64,000 bases of DNA from Bugula neritina (Eukaryota > Animalia > Bryozoa), in contig OZ037768.1 of NCBI GenBank assembly GCA_964035545.1, positions 2,636,741 to 2,700,740 of the forward strand, given 5' to 3'. The translations under genes and the position numbers were made by a program. Shown here one piece after another: positions 19,117 through 42,363 of the stretch (the stretch's first letter is position 1; every line of letters starts with the position of its first letter). Under the pieces are notes generated by a model that worked only from the letters and a program-made list of their open reading frames with translations, was not told the DNA's origin and did not search any database.

Positions 19117-26943
<7,827 letters not shown>

Positions 26944-29011: not shown

Positions 29012-31109
29012 TTATGAAATGTTGCAGCCGGTGGTATTACTGCCTCTTCTGCATTGCGGGGAGATCATTCCTTGAAGACGAAATTTCACTCTCTCATAGG
29101 TCAAGATGAAGGATTGGCGGTTCTCTATGCTATTGTAGAACCTGTCATGTGTCAGACTGTGTTTCTCCTTGTGCAGTCTCCACATGGCGTTAGTTATCTC
29201 CCTTGGTAGTTGTCTGCAGTTGAATCTTGCAGTCTTTATTTTGTCTCCTGTCAACAGAATCTGAGGCTAAGCATTGATTATTGATCATATATATAAATAT
29301 ACTAATTATATTCAAATAAAATCTATTCCCCAAAATTTGCAGTTACTGCAGTGTATCATATTCACATAAATTTTCATTAGAAAAATCAACTATTATTATG
29401 AATTAGTTAAAGTCTATAGTTATTTATTTTATCTTCTATTTAATATATTTTATTAGATTCAATAAAATAAATATATAATGCATGCATGTAGTCACAGCGT
29501 TTAGCCATGGCATTAAAGTTATGTATATATATTATACAGGCATAAAATTTTATAATAACTATATATGATATAATTCAAAAATAAAATTATTCCAAACAAA
29601 ATTAATTTCAAGCAAAGCACAAGCAGACGCTAATGCCTATGCTACGCAATGCTACGTTACATTTGTAGTACCAGCAAAATATGGCGCTACTCAAACACAG
29701 TGTTGGCTTATGGATTGTGTTGAACTTGGTCACTGTTTGTTCAATTCAGTGTCATCATGGTGGTTTTGTCATAACACAGCTATAGAAATTACAGCAGTTT
29801 TAGTTTTAGGTTTCATAAAATCTCTATCTAATTGCCAGGGGAAGAAAATGCATATCTCCTAAATGAGTTTGCCAATGTTGAACATAAATGCTATAGCTGC
29901 AATTTTTTTATTATATCACATGATAACAATATTTATTGAAATCCTAAGAGCATTATTACATAACATGTAGAAGCAGTACTTCATACGGCAATAGTGAAAC
30001 ATTTTAAAAAAACAACGAGTTCCAAAAAATGGCTATTTTTTAAAAATAGTCAGCAAATTGTAAACTGCTTGGCAGTCATAAATGACTCAGCGAGTATTAA
30101 GATACTAACTGGAGTTATCCTCTTTTTAATAAAGCTTGTCTATCAAACTTATACCCTGTACAATACAAGTTACAGATTTTTATATAAGCTGCATAAAAAA
30201 ACTTTGAAATGTTTTTTTTTCAAAAAGTTCAAAGTGTTATATTGTCAGTTGAAATAAATAGTATTTTCAGAAACTATTGAATAAAAAGAAAGACAGGGTT
30301 TATCTCCTGCCCTCCCTCTAATCACACAAACTGAGAAGCTCAAGCTATTTACGGCTGCATTTTGTGTGATGCTTACAAAATGACATGGTGTGGACTTTTT
30401 CATTTAGATATAAATATATTATATACATTGCAATTGTATATACTTTCAAATGTTAAGCTAATAAAATACTAGCGTCCGTGGTGACATTAAACAAGTTAGA
30501 AACCATGTAACTTTTAGCAAAACTTTTGCACATTTCTAAGATAATGGGGGCGTATAATGTTCTATTAAACAGTATAATGTGAGTTTTTATATATTTTTAT
30601 AGTTTTACAACATTACAGCAAAATTTCATTTTGAGCAAAAACATCTCAAATTAAATTATGTTCATGTTTCTAAATACATACAATCATTGCTTTCTATTTT
30701 TATTAAAATTTAAGTATTTAAACTAATTAACTGGTAAAATTATAATATATAAAATTGCTTTATTACAAATTGTACAACATTTTAAAACTTATAGTTTTAA
30801 ATCTAGTGGGTCCTATTTTATTACAATGTGAGTTTTTCAAAGACCACTTCGTTACACTGTATTTTATTAAAACAATTTTAATAAACTTTCAACCGGCCCA
30901 TTATATTATAAACATTATGCACATCACCCTAGTACTACGTAGAACTATAACAGTTTAGCATTCAGTCTATACTCACCTAAGCTGTTTCCAGTAGCAAAGA
31001 AGTACTCAGTCAATATGAATTCAAGGTCTTTAGATAGCCTGATGACCATTTCAAAGTCATTGGCAGAATATGGATCTCTGCAGACGTAAGTGCTTGATGT
31101 GTTGCCCAT
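29012..31109 (-). CDS. HEPN/DUF4145-like small protein A (122 aa), with N-myristoylation and CaaX signals and a degenerate catalytic motif
   Basis: Exons 30977-31109 and 29012-29247 are joined by a phase-1 GT-AG intron, giving MGNTSS...NDFEMVIRLSKDLEFIL...KEKHSLTHD...GCNIS*. TATA-like TATATAA at 31427-31433 and a probable 5' UTR exon near 31368-31400. Confidence 0.8.
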
Positions 31110-31805
31110 GCTGATTAGTTTGTCGCTAAAGTTAGGCTAAAACAAAAAAGTTTTCTCAAAGGCAAAATTTAAAACTCGTGTAATATGCCTGTAATGAGCA
31201 TTACGAAAAAAAGCTCATTTTGTGTTAAAATAAAAGCACTAAAGAATTAAGAAGAAAAACTATGAAAAAGTTGATTAGTATATTATCATATAATAAAGCC
31301 AAGTAATAGTTTCTATACTGAGCATATTCGTGCTGTTGCTGCAGGCAAGTATATATAAAAGTTTTACCTGTTGAATCCAAGATGGAGCAGTGCTATGTGG
31401 TCTCTGTTTGGTGCTGAAGTGTCTGCTTATATAGCTGCTTATTCAAGGCCATCTATTGGTAGATAAATATATCATGCATAGCTGATGGTCACAGGTTACT
31501 CGTCAATTTCACTTCATAAATAGAAGACAATTCCCAAGTTAACAATGTTATCTCATTCAAGTAACAATTTCTTATCACTAATGTAATAGTATTAATTTGA
31601 ATCAAATAATAATTTGAATTTAGTAGTTATCTTCTCATTGGTTTTTTTCTATCAAGGAACTGATCAATTTATAATTAAATTAGCCTTTTTGTATGTATCT
31701 AGTTTATTCCGCTGTATTTGTCCCGTACCAATTTGTAAACTACAAACGTCTCGTAACTTTGTTGTAGAGTTGCCTTCACATGCACACCTATTCTATAACC
31801 TATAG

Positions 31806-32035
31806 CAGGGGTGGGCAACTTTGTTTGCATGAGGGCCAAGTTTAGAAGTCAGCTAAAACAAAGAGCCAGATAATTGTATACATTTTAAGTTTTATTATAG
31901 TAAGGTAATTTGTCACCAAACCTATACTGTGGTTATCAGAATGCATCTAACAGTTTTACTTATCATAAGCCTTAAAAGAGCCACTGAAAAGTCTTAGGCA
32001 AAGGGTTACAGGTGGCCCCTAGTTGCCCACCCCTG
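31806..32035. mobile_element. hAT (Charlie-like) MITE
   Basis: TIRs CAGGGGTGGGCAACT / AGTTGCCCACCCCTG. The flanks ACCTATAG and CTCTATAG resemble an 8-bp TSD (6/8 match). Confidence 0.75.
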
Positions 32036-32068
32036 CTCTATAGTCATTGAATTGTTATATAACTATAT

Positions 32069-32157
32069 AGCTCTAAGTTGGGGGTGACTGAGTGCAGTAG
32101 TTTGGAGTTGGGGAACTAACTCCAAACTACTGCACTCAGTCACCCCAATTTGGAGCT
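32069..32157. mobile_element. Short palindromic MITE-like element
   Basis: GGGGTGACTGAGTGCAGTAGTTTGGAGTT / AACTCCAAACTACTGCACTCAGTCACCCC hairpin. A related copy lies at 60977-61115. Confidence 0.7.
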
Positions 32158-33066
32158 GCTGACTTAGTATTTAACTAGCAATGAAAATAGGATATTAATG
32201 TCATATGATCACTTATCTTGTATGTTAGTTTCGGCTTTGTTGGTGATTTTTGCATGATTATTGTTTTCTTGATTTTTGTTAGCAGTCAATCTTTTTCACA
32301 AGAATGGAGTTTTGGTAAAAACCAGTCAATCAGTTTCCTCACCATTGAGTCAATTAGGATACAGATACACACAATATACAACCAGCTATTGGGATTTCAA
32401 TTTATTTGATAGAAACTCGTAAAATCACTGAATTATAAATTATTACACGAGGTTACAGTTAATCCGTGTATTACACTCACGGAACAAGTGGTGGTTAAAA
32501 AAGTATATAATTCTGAAGACTGCTGGTGGAAAACAATGGTTTACAGAATACAAAAGAACAATGCACAATATTATACTCAATATAGTCGCCTTACAAAACT
32601 ACCTAGCTATTGTGGTGACCAAAGTCAACTTATCAAAAGTAAAAATTTCGTAGCTTTGGGCGGACAGGGAAGTTTTTTCAGTCACGCAGTTAGCCCATAA
32701 CTATCATTGCAGGTTGGCATTTGATTATTCAGTATACAGTATACAGTCTTTAAAGATTGCAAAAAAGTTTTGGATTCAACTAAAACTAAACGGTATCAAG
32801 CATAGTATTTATGCAAAAATTGATGGTTTCATTACAAAAAGAAAGAAATATGTGTGCATAGATTAGATGCAGAATTTGCACTGACTAATGATACAAAAAT
32901 AATTATTAGGAATCATCTGAGATCTACATTGCTTAATAACTGGTCCACTAATACTTCGGAAAAAATATATCATCATAATATTTAAAAACAATACTTGGAT
33001 AAAATGCATTTGGCATTAAAAACAAAGTTACATTGACCTATTTAAATATTTTGCGTCATTTTACAA

Positions 33067-33888
33067 TTAGGAAATGACGCATCCGTATCCACCAGATGAC
33101 GAAGGAGAGATCAGTTGCTGCAGACTATGCTTTGCCTGCTGGTAGGTTGTAATAAATGATTGGCGATTTTGAATTTTGTTGTAAGTTCTATCATGTACCA
33201 ATTTGTTCCTTTCTTTATTGAGCTGCCATAATGCATTGGTTATTCCTCTCGGCAACTTCTGACCGTTATAAGTTGCAGAATTGATTTTCTCACCTGGACA
33301 ACAAACAAAGTTAAATTATACAGGTAGGCATATAAAGCAATGTTGCCTCAGTTTCAGATTGCCACTATTTACATTAGAAACGATCTGTTAATTGTTCGCA
33401 GAAACTGATTACAAAGCATATTTACAGTTCATGTAGGAAATGTTTAACATATGGATTTATTTTGGTACCTTCATAGTTAGGCATCTAATACTGTGCAGTT
33501 ATGCTTGAAAATAAGTTACCAATAAAAGACAAACAAAACTAAAAGGTGCCTTGCTACTAATAATTGATAACAATATTTGCAAGTTCTATATAAGATCTTG
33601 CAAATATTCTAATGCAAATAACCCTAAAGCCTGTGGCACTGTTTAACAGTACAATAACCAACCACCAGAAAATCTGGATCTATATACTAGCAGATTCCTC
33701 ATCTCACGATTTGCTGCTCAGACTATAGAGTTAAATTGAATTAGCAGCAAGTTACCAAATCCGTTGCCAGTAGCTTGAAAGTGCTCAGTTAGAAAGTACT
33801 CTAGGTCCTTGGCTAGTCTGATGACTAGTTCAAAATCATTTGTGGAGTAGGATTCTGCATACCTAAGATCACTCGAACTGTTACCCAT
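33067..33888 (-). CDS. HEPN/DUF4145-like small protein B (119 aa), with N-myristoylation and CaaX signals and an intact RxxxxH motif
   Basis: Exons 33756-33888 and 33067-33293, with the same intron position and phase as paralogue A, give MGNSSS...NDFELVIRLAKDLEYFL...KERNKLVHD...GCVIS*. Confidence 0.82.
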
Positions 33889-34365
33889 TGTCTGTTTTGA
33901 TCACCTTGAAAAATTCGGATTAGCAATGCAATATTGATTTAACTGTAGTATGGTTAAAATATATTCCCTCCACCCTGCTCACAAGCAAAGCTCAGCCATT
34001 CCATTTGTCCTCCATATTTTCAAAAACTGCTACAGTTAATTGTGCCATGAATACAAACCTGCTGTTTCTTTAGCAACAATCAGACAATTTTATAACTTCA
34101 TTGACTGACTCGCACTATATAAAGCACACTATAAAATGTATGCATTATCTCAAAACCATACTAATATATATATAGAAATTATATAATATAACTTTTACAA
34201 CATGTATTACGATTATAATAGATAAAAAACAATAACAATATATGGGATAGCTTTAACTTTTCAAGTCAGTGAGTTAAGCAGGTTCAACTCAAAAATGAAT
34301 TTGAAGTGTCTGGGTCAATATGGACGCAGCACTGCTACTATTACGTCAATAATTTACTAGTTAGA

Positions 34366-34716
34366 TTTCAAGTAGCTATAAGTTTTACTATAACTGTATA
34401 AGTATGCCCAAAATTCTTTTTATCAAACTCAAAATATATGATAAATAAACCAAACAATATGATCTTCCAGTTACTATTATACATGGTGCCTGTTGGGAAA
34501 ACTGGGAAAGCTTTTCCCTAATGCATGATAGCTTTTCACATATCATCTCAGCTAGGCCAGCTATACAATTACAATTACAAGTAGCTACAAGTTTTACTAT
34601 AACTGTATAAGTATGCCCAGAATTCTTTGACATGGTGATATTTTTATCAAACTCAAAATATATGATAAATAAATCAAACAACATGATCTTGCAGTTACTA
34701 TTCTACATGGTGCCAG
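34366..34716. repeat. Local direct duplication (two imperfect copies, about 130 bp)
   Basis: CAAGTAGCTA...TACATGGTGCC occurs at about 34368-34490 and again at about 34578-34714. Confidence 0.8.
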
Positions 34717-35638
34717 TTGTGATAAGACTAAAAGTGTTTTTATCACACTTGAACCTAAAATGTTGAGCGAGATTCAGATAGTGACATAGTGTTACAGCTA
34801 GTGTAACTTGTAAGTGTTAAGTTTTTATCCCAAGTTTAAGTTATATCTGTTAGCAGTTATGACTTAGTCACTTACAAGTTACTGACCATCACTTAATAAG
34901 GATACTAACATTGTTGATGCTAAAATTAATAATTAGCTTAAAATATTTAAATTAGTTTCCACTTACGCCACACAATAGTAAGCTGGAACGATGGAGACTT
35001 GCTAGTTACTAGTTCACGGGAACATTTAAAACAAGACACAGAGAACCACTAACAGAAGTGTTAATGTTTCACTGACGACTCCGGAGAGCCCGCAGTGGAA
35101 AAGATTAATGAATTAGGCTATGTACGCGTGTATTTGTTTAGAAAACATGATCATGTGATATCGTATAAAAATTTACATAAGAAAAGATAACTCCGTATAA
35201 CAACAATTGTTTTTGTAGTATTGTTTTTTGCATCAAGCAAATGTTCAAGTTTCAAGTCATAACTACAATGAACGTAACTTGAACCGATTTTAAAGTGCCT
35301 GCATGTTAAACCAGCATAACATTAGGTAAGCTAAGAAAGGTTTTCAGATTTGTGTAACAACTCAATCTAATGGCATTTCAATAAACATGTATGCAAGAAA
35401 TTGCTGAAGTAAATATATTTCAAGTCTCCATCATAAATATACAACAGTTTTTGCATGTACCGGACAAAAGATAAAAACATTACAAACAAATCACAAAAAA
35501 GGCCTTGATGCAAATATATTTTGTCTAGATTTTATGAACAAGTTATTTCCCAAAATGCATCAGACGAAATTCCAGTAACTCCTGGACCTGAACCTTGTCA
35601 ACACATCTAGCCAATCAGCAGCTAATAGCCACATTTTC

Positions 35639-38600
35639 TCAGGTTTTATCCAAGGAGAAGGGGGTCAGCTTATGGCCCGCCTTCAGCAGTATATGGTCAA
35701 CAAGAAAGAAGCTACATCTTTCATTGTCCTTCACCCAATCATCCACCACATCCTGTAATATAGAATATTCCATTTGTTGTGGGAGAATTAATTATAAAAT
35801 TTCTCTTTAATGCTGAGTACTCACCTTGTCATGTAAATAAAAATATATTAGAAGTATTTCAATTTTATTAATATTCACTTGAATCTACAGTTACATTAAA
35901 ATTAATCTTGTTACATTAAAGATGATTTTGACTACTGCTGAAATCAACACAGCCATAATCAATATAATTGAAACATAAAATCATGCTGAAAAATCTTCAC
36001 AATCAATTTGTTAGTAAAACAATTATACCAAAAGAGTACGCTACGCTTACCATGAGTAGCAGCATAGTCTTAGAGTACTCCATAGTATATACATGTTATT
36101 AGCTACAGTATACACATGTTACAGCTACAGTATATACATGTTACAGCTACAGTATATACATGTTACTAGCTACAGAAATCACAGTTGCTGAAACTAGCTA
36201 CACCAAAACTGCACCGTCTACAGACTGATTGAATTACCTGCAAGCCATCGATGAATTCATCCGTAAAATCCCCTTTAGCATCGTACAGGCACCAGCATAA
36301 GCTTACATGAAAAGATGGTTCCTAGAAAGAAAAAAATATTAGAAAAAATGAGGCTCATCTATAATACAAAACCTTTTCCAGTGCAAAGTTTCTGACCCCA
36401 AATCATTTATCAATATAATTATATATCCTCATTATTACTTTATATCAACAATATTCAGAACAAACCACAGCGTTACCTACAACCAACAACAGTTTAATAT
36501 TCAACATAACATGATGGCTACAAACATCTGGTTTACTTGGACTATTCTTTAGAACTGAAGTTATCTACACTAATAGTTTAGGAAATAAATGTCTTGCTTT
36601 AAATGTTTATTCTGCATTTTTAAAATCAGCATCGCCGGTAAAGGTTTAAATCTAACATGCACTTAGAATGACATCAATCAACCTAAACTACAAAAACGAA
36701 CAGGGCTAGATCCAAGTCAAAGTGACTCGAATAAACATTTTAAAGAGAAAAGAGTATCAGTTGTACGAAATAATATTTATTTGAGAACAGTTGTGCCAGC
36801 AGCTTGCCTGTACAGTGTAGACTGTAGAGTAACCAATGCAAAGTATTTCTAATACAGATGATGAAAATCATTATTACAAGTATATTAAAACATTAATTCA
36901 CTTCAGAACTCCAGAATTTCACTGATAACTGATTAGACCTTATCTCAATATCTGAGAGTTATAAAATTAAAAATTGTGAAGTAAAGCATGGAAACTCACA
37001 TCGTAGAATGGTGGGAGGTTATACATAGCCAGCACTTTATTAAGACTATTCACTATTTTTAGTAGCTGTTCGTCTCCACACACTACTTTGACGCCGACAA
37101 ATGTCCTGGTACGTTCATCATTCACATAGACATCCACATCTCTTAGGCTCACATAGAAACTGTAGGAAAATACACAGAGCTATAGAGAGCACAACTCTAA
37201 ATTTATGGTGCACAGTTAGTTAAAATGAGAAGACAACTACTAAACCAAAATTATGTTAGTTATAACAGCTTGGGAATAGAGAGCCTTCGTAGGAAGAGTC
37301 TACAGAGTATGTGATAGATAAGTTAACAATATACAATCATTCTATGAAAGTGTGTTTGAAATCTGTAAATGACTGAAAACAGGGAGACTGGCTAACATAT
37401 GAGTTATAGAGCTAGAAAATGAAGAGCTGGTAGATATGCAGTGCATGTGTCTGAAAGAAAACCCCTCCAGGTCTGATAACAATGCCCAGAGAAACCCACA
37501 CACACATCAGACATGAGTGAATGGTTTAAATATAACACAACATCAGACGCAAGTAGGTGACATGAATAGAACACACAGCACGTGTACTGCAATTAAAATC
37601 TGACCTCCTAAACAAGGCGGCCATGTTTTCTAATGACTGACTGAGGTCACTTAGCCAATGATGCCTCAGTTTGAGCGTGCGGGTGAGACTAATGTGGGGG
37701 TTGTCAATCTTATGGAAAGGATGTCTGTGTGTAGATCTTGCATTGAGTTGCTCTAACAACGAGTCTGACAGTTCATTCAGATCTTCAGCGTACGGAACTA
37801 AAACAACGAATAAACTGTGAACGCTTGACAAGAGTTTCGTTGATACAGTTATATGCACGGAGAGACAAATATTTGAATATTGTATAAATAGCTTGTGGCT
37901 TCAGCAACATTTCAACATTGTACATGGTTACAAAAATGATATCTACAAAAAGTTAAAATGATATGTTATTATAATTTACACTGTAAATATATTGTTAACT
38001 AAAATCAAATAATAAGCTATGACATCACCATTTATTTTTTATATTACTGAAAAATATGTGCTCAGTATTTGGCTGCACTTTTTAACTGGCAGATACTTAA
38101 TGTCTTAAATTATGTTAGTTTAATTAGCCTATGGGATTTTAATAAGCACCATAGTTGAGGTATAAATATTTCATTCCAAACTGAATAGAAAGGTAAATGA
38201 GCTGAACCTGTTACGGATATATAAGAAGCCCAATTCCCTCTCTCATGTTCAAAAGATCTGATCCTGCCTTCATGCTGTTCTATATCATCAGTACTTTCAC
38301 ATTTACTTTGTTTTGAGGCAGAGACGGGAGGAGGCAGATTTACAACAGCACTAAACGTGACAAGTAAGAACAGTTTAGTAGTATAGTTACAATCCTGCAC
38401 TGCATAGACTTTATCTAGTACTAGACAAAAGAGTACTATAAATGTATAAACAACATTATTTAGTATAAGGAAGAGAGAAATTTTAGAGATATTATTCATA
38501 AACCATGCAATTAATCAAGTGCAAATAACAAATTCTTAATAATGTAGTAAACAAGACTTAGAAAAAGCAAAGCTATCAAGCAAAACACATGCAGAGTATA

Positions 38601-41436: not shown

Positions 41437-42363
41437 TCAGTCTCCCTCGTAGACTATGTGTATTGCAGTATCACGTTTTTCATTAGTGTCCAAATCAGTA
41501 GTTTCTGGTGGCTGCTCTATTTGGCTTTCTTCCAGCCCTATTAGCCATTCAACTATTCGTTTGTCTTTCTCGTCGTCTGTATCATACCCGGCATCGGAGT
41601 TCCCATTCAACGGCGCCATTGATGAAGACAAGCTGCTACTCTGAGAGCAGTGCCGCAGTTTACTGAGGTTCTCTTGGCTCAGGCGGCTTGCTGGCATCTG
41701 ATTGGGGCTTTTTGTGTCTGGAGGAGTTGGAAGAAGAGGAGGGTTGTTATTAGTATCAGGAGAAATGAGAGTCACCATTTGTGTGCTCCGAATACTTATG
41801 TGTCTGTCTGTTATGGGTGGAGGAGTTGTTACTGTGCTGTTAGGTATCAGTTTGGTTTCATTTTTAATGATACCATTCTGTGAAATTGCTAATTGAGCTA
41901 GACCTGACTGTAAGCTACCAGGCGCCCCTATCTCATACAAAGTTTCTAATCTGCCATTCATATTCTGACTGCTGTTAAGGTCTCCAGTCCACGTCCTGGA
42001 TCTGTTCAACCCTCCAGCTGCCGGAGACAGCCGTGTTGATCTGTTACTCCCGTCGTGACTGGAAGTTGTTGAAGTTGGACTGAGAGGAGATTTACGATTT
42101 GATCGCTTTGGAGGAGGATCTAAATTGAGCTCTAATGAAACGTCATATTGTCTGCGTTGCGTTGGCGAGTTGTAGCTCGGAGAGTGAGGTTTAGCACCAA
42201 TAGGAGGAAGTTCTGGAGCACTCAGCTTTCTCTCCTGATTCCACTCTCCTCTAGCATTAGCTCCTGGCAAAAGAATAGCCTTTTCTCTTGTAGTATCTGT
42301 GCCACCTGCTATTGTATTCTTTCCAATAGAGATTAGGTTACCATTTTTTACTGGCATTCCCAT
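41437..42363 (-). CDS. Uncharacterised 308-aa S/P-rich protein (single coding exon)
   Basis: Long ORF in very AT-rich surroundings with a splice acceptor just upstream of the ATG. It is mostly disordered, with a compact C-terminus (DKRIVEWLIGLE...DTAIHIVYEGD). Confidence 0.8.
   Translation of the reverse strand: MGMPVKNGNLISIGKNTIAGGTDTTREKAILLPGANARGEWNQERKLSAPELPPIGAKPHSPSYNSPTQRRQYDVSLELNLDPPPKRSNRKSPLSPTSTTSSHDGSNRSTRLSPAAGGLNRSRTWTGDLNSSQNMNGRLETLYEIGAPGSLQSGLAQLAISQNGIIKNETKLIPNSTVTTPPPITDRHISIRSTQMVTLISPDTNNNPPLLPTPPDTKSPNQMPASRLSQENLSKLRHCSQSSSLSSSMAPLNGNSDAGYDTDDEKDKRIVEWLIGLEESQIEQPPETTDLDTNEKRDTAIHIVYEGD

Follow-up and report, generated by a model that had tools for sequence, protein, structure and literature searches.

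In a 64,000-nucleotide (nt) stretch of genomic DNA from the bryozoan Bugula neritina (NCBI GenBank assembly GCA_964035545.1, contig OZ037768.1, positions 2,636,741 to 2,700,740 of the forward strand; "the window" refers to this whole stretch), two tandem genes on the minus strand, here called A and B, are very probably real genes of a lipid-anchored HEPN-like family. Their products appear to be ~115-130-amino-acid (aa) single-domain HEPN-fold proteins of a widely scattered eukaryotic family. As the overall explanation, we lean toward a lipid-anchored HEPN-fold family in which protein A would be the active member of the pair and protein B its partner. The family is apparently undescribed, and it is much broader than could be seen in a preliminary description of this DNA, which was made from the letters of the window.

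Reading of the region and translation of the exons gave the following gene models (window coordinates; a slash marks the exon-intron boundary):

33888-33067, minus strand: gene A, whole; two exons encoding a 119-aa product that starts with MGNSSS and ends with CVIS
33756..33888, minus strand: gene A coding exon 1; 133 nt, from Met1 to the first base of Gly45; donor G/GTAACT
33294..33755, minus strand: gene A intron; 462 nt, GT..AG, phase 1 in Gly45
33067..33293, minus strand: gene A coding exon 2, including the stop codon; acceptor ..gtccag/GT
33193-33210, minus strand: gene A motif R73-N-K-L-V-H78, in exon 2
33070-33081, minus strand: gene A CaaX box CVIS, in exon 2 and abutting the stop codon
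31109-29012, minus strand: gene B, whole; two exons encoding a 122-aa product that starts with MGNTSS and ends with CNIS
30977..31109, minus strand: gene B coding exon 1; 133 nt; donor G/GTGAGT
29248..30976, minus strand: gene B intron; 1729 nt, GTGAGT..AG, phase 1 in Gly45
29012..29247, minus strand: gene B coding exon 2, including the stop codon; acceptor ..ttgacag/GA
29147-29164, minus strand: gene B degenerate motif K73-H-S-L-T-H78, in exon 2
29015-29026, minus strand: gene B CaaX box CNIS, in exon 2 and abutting the stop codon

These models reproduce what the preliminary description had reported, namely paralogs of 122 and 119 aa with a 133-nt first exon and the same phase-1 intron, MGNxSS starts, and CaaX ends (CNIS and CVIS); its coordinates, 29012-33888, extend exactly from the gene B stop codon to the gene A start codon. 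Together, these features go well beyond what chance would give. In both genes, the intron splits the Gly45 codon after its first base (phase 1), and an in-frame TGA lies five codons upstream of the gene A ATG. Immediately upstream of the gene B ATG there is an acceptor-like site, and a donor-like site is found near 31366. Exon-wise alignments place protein A and protein B at ~57% aa identity, in agreement with the 55-60% counted earlier by hand. At position 43, protein B has Ser instead of the family-conserved Gly43. The starts of both proteins (MGNSSSD in A, MGNTSST in B) fit the N-myristoylation consensus, and the ends of both (CVIS in A, CNIS in B) fit CaaX; proteins A and B may thus carry myristate on Gly2 and a farnesyl group on the CaaX Cys.

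An annotated 118-aa B. neritina protein (P0001) was used as a full-length stand-in for protein A in whole-protein analyses, as the two are identical in the part encoded by exon 1 and 91% identical in the part encoded by exon 2; the window genes themselves were searched exon by exon. We used phmmer to compare P0001 with 1.84 billion representative sequences, and this search identified 213 related clusters at E<1e-3. Conservation was assessed in an alignment of 89 sequences, and motifs and anchors were counted in 238 complete members of 90-200 aa. Arg73 is the one invariant residue in the alignment; Asn74, His78, Gly41, Gly43, Leu44, Lys27, Glu30, and Asp18 are conserved at ≥90%, and the family signature is G-x-G-L-[H/G]-E-K ... 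R-N-x-L-x-H. The RxxxxH motif to which the preliminary description had drawn attention is conserved among homologs, with R[NQDH]xxxH present in 230 of the 238 complete members.

Labeled eukaryotic members of the family come from diatoms (Seminavis, Ditylum, Fragilaria, Skeletonema, Detonula, and Craspedostauros), green algae (Parachlorella, Micractinium, Auxenochlorella, and Pyramimonas), the haptophyte Chrysotila, Chromera, and the ichthyosporean Amoebidium parasiticum; oomycete members were seen in an Atlas row only. Labeled animal members belong to the cheilostome bryozoans Bugula and Watersipora. No other animal appears among the labeled matches, a result limited by the databases and by the word-based search, such that absence is not proven. 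One diatom member and one Chromera member bear the UniRef label "DUF4145 domain-containing." Literature searches for HEPN together with myristoylation, prenylation, CaaX, farnesyl, or tail anchoring returned no relevant paper, and searches for DUF4145 in eukaryotes returned nothing relevant. Two metagenomic members have repeated architectures: P0002 (233 aa) naturally joins two complete domains in tandem, with RNxxxH in each, and P0006 (1019 aa), labeled DUF1330 in one source, consists of ~17 tandem 56-aa repeats with RNLMRH in each.

We scored myristoylation signals with a PROSITE-type consensus, G-{EDRKHPFYW}-x-x-[STAGCN]-{P}, with Ser6 preferred, and CaaX boxes as a Cys that is fourth from the C-terminal end, then two mostly aliphatic residues and X. 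Both signals together were found in 105/238 members, and the dual lipidation that had been proposed for A and B is therefore a predicted, family-wide feature. A CaaX box without the myristoylation consensus was found in 31/238 members (any CaaX, 136/238), and a myristoylation signal alone in 24/238 (consensus fitted in 132/238 overall). Because several CaaX-only members (P0009, P0010, P0018, and P0019) have MGxxxS just upstream of the domain, mis-called N-termini are indicated. Ser occupies position 6 in 128 of the 138 members that start with MG. Based on the specificity of farnesyltransferase, a CaaX box in which X is S, M, C, A, or Q directs farnesylation; given that X in this family is mostly S (49 members), M (39), or C (33), with L in 8, farnesylation is the expected modification. 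Among MG-starting members, Cys occurs within residues 3-8 in 7/31 of those that lack CaaX and in 5/107 of those that have it. Another 50 of the 238 members lack both lipid motifs and instead have, right after the domain, a hydrophobic C-terminal transmembrane helix. Four proteins of unlabeled marine eukaryotes (P0014, P0020, P0260, and P0261) form a sister subgroup of the bryozoan/Amoebidium clade; two of them, P0014 and P0020, lack CaaX and have basic C-terminal ends (..KRR and ..FKR), with an MG start in P0020 and none in P0014, and this subgroup may use a myristoyl-plus-polybasic anchor.

AlphaFold2, with the family alignment as input, produced a model of P0001 with a predicted local distance difference test (pLDDT) score of 88.5 and helices at residues 18-37, 44-50, 60-78, and 88-106. 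R73-N74...H78 is located at the C-terminal end of the helix at residues 60-78 (helix 3). In HEPN proteins, the Rx4-6H motif lies where helix 3 ends, and a polar residue (N, D, or H) after the Arg marks active families (PMC3710099). An exhaustive structure comparison with VIA-align identified the HEPN protein 2hsb as the top match (Z 8.8), and the top 50 contained at least 12 other HEPN entries; further matches were 1wwp, HepS, 1ufb, HepT, HEPN toxins, sacsin HEPN, ST0689, Csm6, and Roquin. HEPN, DUF4145, and RiboL-PSP clusters are among the Atlas structure rows.

At the sequence level, the Pfam scan of the four exon translations and P0001 yielded nothing meaningful, DUF4145 included; phmmer and a profile search against PDB sequences gave no match, and NCBIfam and PADLOC gave nothing usable. 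Sub-threshold Pfam matches among the 89 aligned members were to DUF4145 (11 members; best E 4.3e-5), HepT-like (6 members; best E 4.8e-4), HEPN_Apea (2 members), and HEPN_Swt1 (one member), all models of the HEPN clan. The Vibrio cholerae homolog (19.9 bits) and the Chromera member (16.6 bits) score below the Pfam gathering cut-off for DUF4145 (PF13643), which is 23.1 bits, and a DUF4145 scan of five whole bacterial genomes that carry the family found nothing over this cut-off. As all repeated Pfam matches fall on HEPN-clan models but none reaches the cut-off, the proteins appear to represent an unmodeled family of the HEPN superfamily that is nearest to DUF4145 and HepT. The HEPN/DUF4145-like character proposed in the preliminary description can thus be upheld for likeness to HEPN, based on the place of the motif, the structure matches, and the weak HEPN-clan matches in Pfam, but not for membership in DUF4145 as judged by the Pfam cut-off. 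We consider it likely that the family belongs to the HEPN superfamily. If the proteins were instead generic four-helix bundles with a chance RNxxxH, it would be no surprise that every HEPN sequence-profile match is below cut-off and that the structural Z scores are middling for helical bundles; however, independent weak signals agree on one clan (four HEPN Pfam models, the tops of two structure searches, and the Atlas rows), and the motif has the diagnostic location, where helix 3 ends, as well as the diagnostic Asn. Coincidence is accordingly an improbable account of the HEPN likeness.

Comparisons with other assemblies bear on whether A and B are real genes. P0001 was annotated independently in B. 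neritina and uses the same splice as gene A, and B. neritina assembly GCA_010799875.2 has the order MCM2-B-A-USB1(HVSL), as in the window. Between the window and that assembly, the ratio of nonsynonymous to synonymous substitution rates (dN/dS) is 0.12 for A and 0.05 for B, with dS of 0.22-0.28, and the introns of A and B are 80-90% identical (about 88% for the gene A intron). These values indicate that both genes are under purifying selection, B even more strongly than A; on the dN/dS of 0.05, we rejected a pseudogene reading of gene B. The K-H-S-L-T-H sequence and the CaaX box of gene B are kept in both the window and GCA_010799875.2. The dS of 0.22-0.28 also suggests that the window comes from another member of the B. 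neritina species complex or from a close congener.

Beyond Bugula, a 75.9-Mb chromosome of the cheilostome Watersipora subatra carries an ortholog that starts with MGNESS, ends with CLIC, and has its intron at the same position. The same two-exon structure and intron position are found on unlabeled metagenomic eukaryote contigs (L004/L005 and L096); on L096, the family gene adjoins a gene with an Ig-like_KY domain, which we regard as animal. Diatoms, haptophytes, and green algae supply most relatives of A and B, as would be expected if the two genes were contamination or an assembly artifact from algae or protists living on the bryozoan. Nevertheless, the locus is flanked by animal MCM2 and USB1 genes at 2.67 Mb in a contig of 24.8 Mb, its gene order recurs in an independent assembly of B. 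neritina, the Watersipora ortholog is on a chromosome of 75.9 Mb, and the bryozoan-type sequences form their own starred clade. We rejected contamination on synteny and chromosome context, and its probability is negligible.

The members with a transmembrane tail are bacterial wherever checked, including two on metagenomic contigs with bacterial neighbors. Using the bacterial sub-alignment as query and one genome per species, we identified 287 bacterial loci, mostly in Planctomycetota (Gemmataceae, Isosphaeraceae, Phycisphaerae, and Kuenenia), Verrucomicrobiota, and Vibrionaceae, including V. cholerae. The bacterial members are 120-135 aa long, with the HEPN domain from residue 2 and a C-terminal transmembrane helix; no paper on this bacterial transmembrane-tail sister family was found. 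The homolog in V. cholerae ATCC 14035 is located as follows:

L090:4001-4369: V. cholerae ATCC 14035 homolog

Its neighbors are the housekeeping genes Dps, DUF2500, YhhN, RsmD, and FtsY. No conserved partner gene was found beside the bacterial homologs, the most shared neighbor occurring in at most 10 of 43 loci, and an adjacent MNT antitoxin, the trait of the HepT-MntA type VII system, was not found as a shared neighbor of the bacterial loci, beside the V. cholerae homolog, or in the window.

Phylogenetic analysis, with a quick tree of 75 rows and a careful tree of 35 rows, separated the bacterial transmembrane-tail members from the eukaryotic lipidated members (Shimodaira-Hasegawa-like approximate likelihood ratio test [SH-aLRT] support of 98 in the quick tree; 94/98 in the careful tree). 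A and B pair as sisters (94/92) within the starred bryozoan-type clade (99/93), which also contains Watersipora and the intron-bearing metagenomic genes and which groups with Amoebidium and an unlabeled relative (95/90). The position of A and B as sisters inside this clade points to a duplication in the Bugula lineage; the stem branch of B is 0.55 long, and that of A is 0.23. Because A and B are nested deep in the eukaryotic lipidated clade, nearest Amoebidium, and have a conserved spliceosomal intron, a direct transfer from bacteria to bryozoans is not supported, and the horizontal acquisition envisaged in the preliminary description was, in this direct form, rejected on both trees.

A broader version of that idea is that the bryozoan genes arrived by horizontal transfer, either from bacteria or from a eukaryote such as an ichthyosporean-like symbiont, and then gained an intron and expanded. 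The very patchy animal distribution, with Bugula and Watersipora only among labeled proteins, would agree with transfer, as would the nearest labeled relative, Amoebidium, being an animal-associated ichthyosporean. However, Amoebidium is itself a holozoan, such that vertical descent with many losses fits equally well, and the shared intron, the synteny in two assemblies, and the presence of at least seven paralogs argue for long residence in the lineage. Taken as a whole, transfer is a minority possibility, and nearly all of that probability falls to the eukaryote-to-eukaryote version, which we likewise hold to be fairly unlikely; the bacterial version, contradicted by the well-supported split between bacterial and eukaryotic members, is very improbable. 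Vertical holozoan descent with many losses and eukaryote-to-eukaryote transfer are equally compatible with these data.

A profile search of the window's own genome identified five further, much more divergent paralogs, for at least seven genes in all; two of these copies are on the contig that contains the window (C4):

C4:2606741-2607379, plus strand: paralog in convergent orientation to the next copy, ~30 kb ahead of the window; MGNSCC start; RNRLVH
C4:2609141-2609771, minus strand: paralog with MGNTGSC start; RNLLVH; Pro/Gly/His-rich (PGGH) repeat linker
C5:10627126-10643609, minus strand: three tandem paralogs with MGNCF start; RNPLCH; Pro-Ala (PAPAPA) linker

All five have the same phase-1 intron in the glycine of G-x-G-L-G and keep RNxxxH; one C5 copy lacks an ATG in the exon-1 frame. 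CaaX occurs in none of the five (0/5), and the N-terminal Cys that they have in its place suggests myristate plus palmitate as a two-signal anchor. Low-complexity linkers part the anchor from the domain in these paralogs, which form long branches in the tree, with unreliable placement.

Protein A keeps R-N-K-L-V-H, whereas B has K-H-S-L-T-H; with the Arg absent from B, only A of the pair retains the catalytic motif. There is about an even prospect that A is an active RNase. Protein B has lost Arg73, Asn74, and Gly43 yet is strongly constrained, and it is therefore most likely an impaired partner or regulator of A, or a protein with changed activity. The HEPN bundle brings the N- and C-termini together (PMC3710099), such that both predicted lipids could enter the same cytosolic membrane leaflet.

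In the arrangement that we propose, the lipids would be inserted in one leaflet via linkers of ~12 residues at the N-terminus and ~10-15 residues at the C-terminus, and helix topology would put the G-x-G-L-[HG]-E-K loop (end of helix 1) and RNxxxH (end of helix 3) at the membrane-distal pole. As a metal-independent endoribonuclease, protein A would cleave RNAs close to the membrane, and it would probably dimerize in the membrane plane, as other HEPN RNases usually do, with a composite site. Protein B could then form a heterodimer with A as a catalytically impaired partner or regulator, or could have an altered activity. Candidate roles include surveillance of membrane-bound mRNAs, stress response, and defense against viruses that replicate on membranes; a role in defense or conflict in particular is possible but doubtful.

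A different function for the same proteins would be that of a non-catalytic, membrane-bound HEPN-like adaptor or ligand-binding module, in which R-N-x-x-x-H binds a nucleotide or a partner. There is precedent in several HEPN families that lack RNase activity, and such a module would be consistent with the strong constraint on B despite its loss of Arg and Asn, with the stand-alone bacterial members in housekeeping contexts, and with the lack of a significant match to any characterized RNase. It is harder to reconcile with the (near-)invariance of R, N, and H across bacteria and eukaryotes, including the polar residue that marks active HEPN families (PMC3710099), and HEPN families that lost catalysis usually lose the motif. 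We regard a non-catalytic module as unlikely, and the lipid-anchored HEPN-fold family with an active A and a partner B as the better explanation.

Several points weigh against this explanation. Among the structural results, a Z score of 8.8 is within the range reachable by unrelated helical bundles; Foldseek with the P0001 model, one of the checks named in the preliminary description, ranks HEPN proteins best (HepT and HepS), yet all of its E-values are >0.1; and the AlphaFold2 model of the tandem protein P0002 has a predicted template modeling (pTM) score of 0.52 and a weak second half, such that dimer geometry is not readable. None of the Pfam, NCBIfam, and PDB sequence matches is significant. 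Protein B lacks Arg73. Lipidation is predicted from motifs, and splicing and expression in this species are deduced by comparison with other assemblies and annotations. Finally, the bacterial relatives stand alone in ordinary neighborhoods and thus provide no contextual support for a role in defense.

Cas13, Csm6, RNase L, and Ire1 have HEPN RNases as their effectors, as do many toxin-antitoxin and abortive-infection systems. The family described here resembles DUF4145 (PF13643) and HepT-like (PF01934) proteins, the sole Pfam models with repeated weak matches (11 and 6 of the 89 members), in having a small, entirely helical domain whose helix 3 ends with R-N-x-x-x-H. It differs from them in that all members tested score below the gathering cut-off, with no restriction, helicase, or MNT fusion and no conserved neighbor; a predicted, obligatory membrane anchor is the family's defining extra feature.

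N-terminal MGxxxS, C-terminal CaaX, or both serve as membrane signals in Src-family kinases, G-alpha subunits, and Ras. The MGNC and MGNSCC starts of the divergent Bugula paralogs are as in myristoyl-plus-palmitoyl proteins. By comparison with Src, G-alpha, and Ras, a single small domain with myristate on one terminus and farnesyl on the opposite one would be unusual, and no paper was found that ties this combination to HEPN.

Ire1/RNase L KEN, C6orf70 (ERMARD), and bacterial transmembrane-fused HEPN proteins likewise place a HEPN RNase at the cytosolic membrane face, with predicted RNA cleavage there (PMC3710099). The membrane-associated HEPN proteins described by Anantharaman et al. 2013 are large and multidomain, with N-terminal or internal transmembrane segments, and in the bacterial DUF4145-like transmembrane group, the transmembrane domain is N-terminal and bears a WP signature (PMC3710099). 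In contrast, the proteins described here consist of the bare domain with predicted myristate and farnesyl in eukaryotes or a C-terminal tail anchor in bacteria; no lipidated eukaryotic HEPN family is described in PMC3710099. What is new is apparently a family and an architecture within the known HEPN kind, and we found no paper that describes them.

A bare HEPN domain with a membrane anchor as its one constant accessory, from bacteria through algae to an animal, would indicate a general, unstudied class of RNA cleavage at membrane surfaces. Across the family, the predicted anchor has been exchanged between a transmembrane tail and two lipid pairs, myristate with farnesyl and myristate with palmitate. 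More speculatively, and with fairly low probability, tethering could be what defines, and is conserved in, an ancient HEPN RNase module that stands alone and cleaves RNA at membrane surfaces, with a bryozoan expansion to at least seven genes and an active/inactive A-B heterodimer; such cleavage, so far unrecognized, would monitor translation at membranes or act against viral replication associated with them. The family is experimentally approachable, as it is present in V. cholerae, culturable green algae, and diatoms. A degenerate B under strong constraint beside an intact A offers a natural test of HEPN half-site regulation by heterodimerization.

In the window, A and B are flanked by an MCM2 gene at 19700-26100 (minus strand), with exons for the MCM core and the MCM2 N-terminal region, and by a USB1/HVSL-type gene and a 308-aa Ser/Pro-rich open reading frame (ORF) at 37526-38499 and 41437-42363 (both minus strand). 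The MCM2 gene, the USB1/HVSL-type gene, and the 308-aa ORF all show synteny with contig VXIV02002496.1 of B. neritina. An ORF of 142 aa at 23885-24313, probably within an MCM2 intron, is a tandem repeat. The intergenic region between A and B contains an element of ~240 nt at 31801-32040 that resembles a miniature inverted-repeat transposable element, with 20-nt inverted repeats at its ends (95% complementary), and a perfect palindrome of 29 nt, with a loop of 8 nt, lies beside it at 32081-32146. Just upstream of gene A, at 34365-34749, two to three direct repeats of ~210-225 nt are 92-95% identical.

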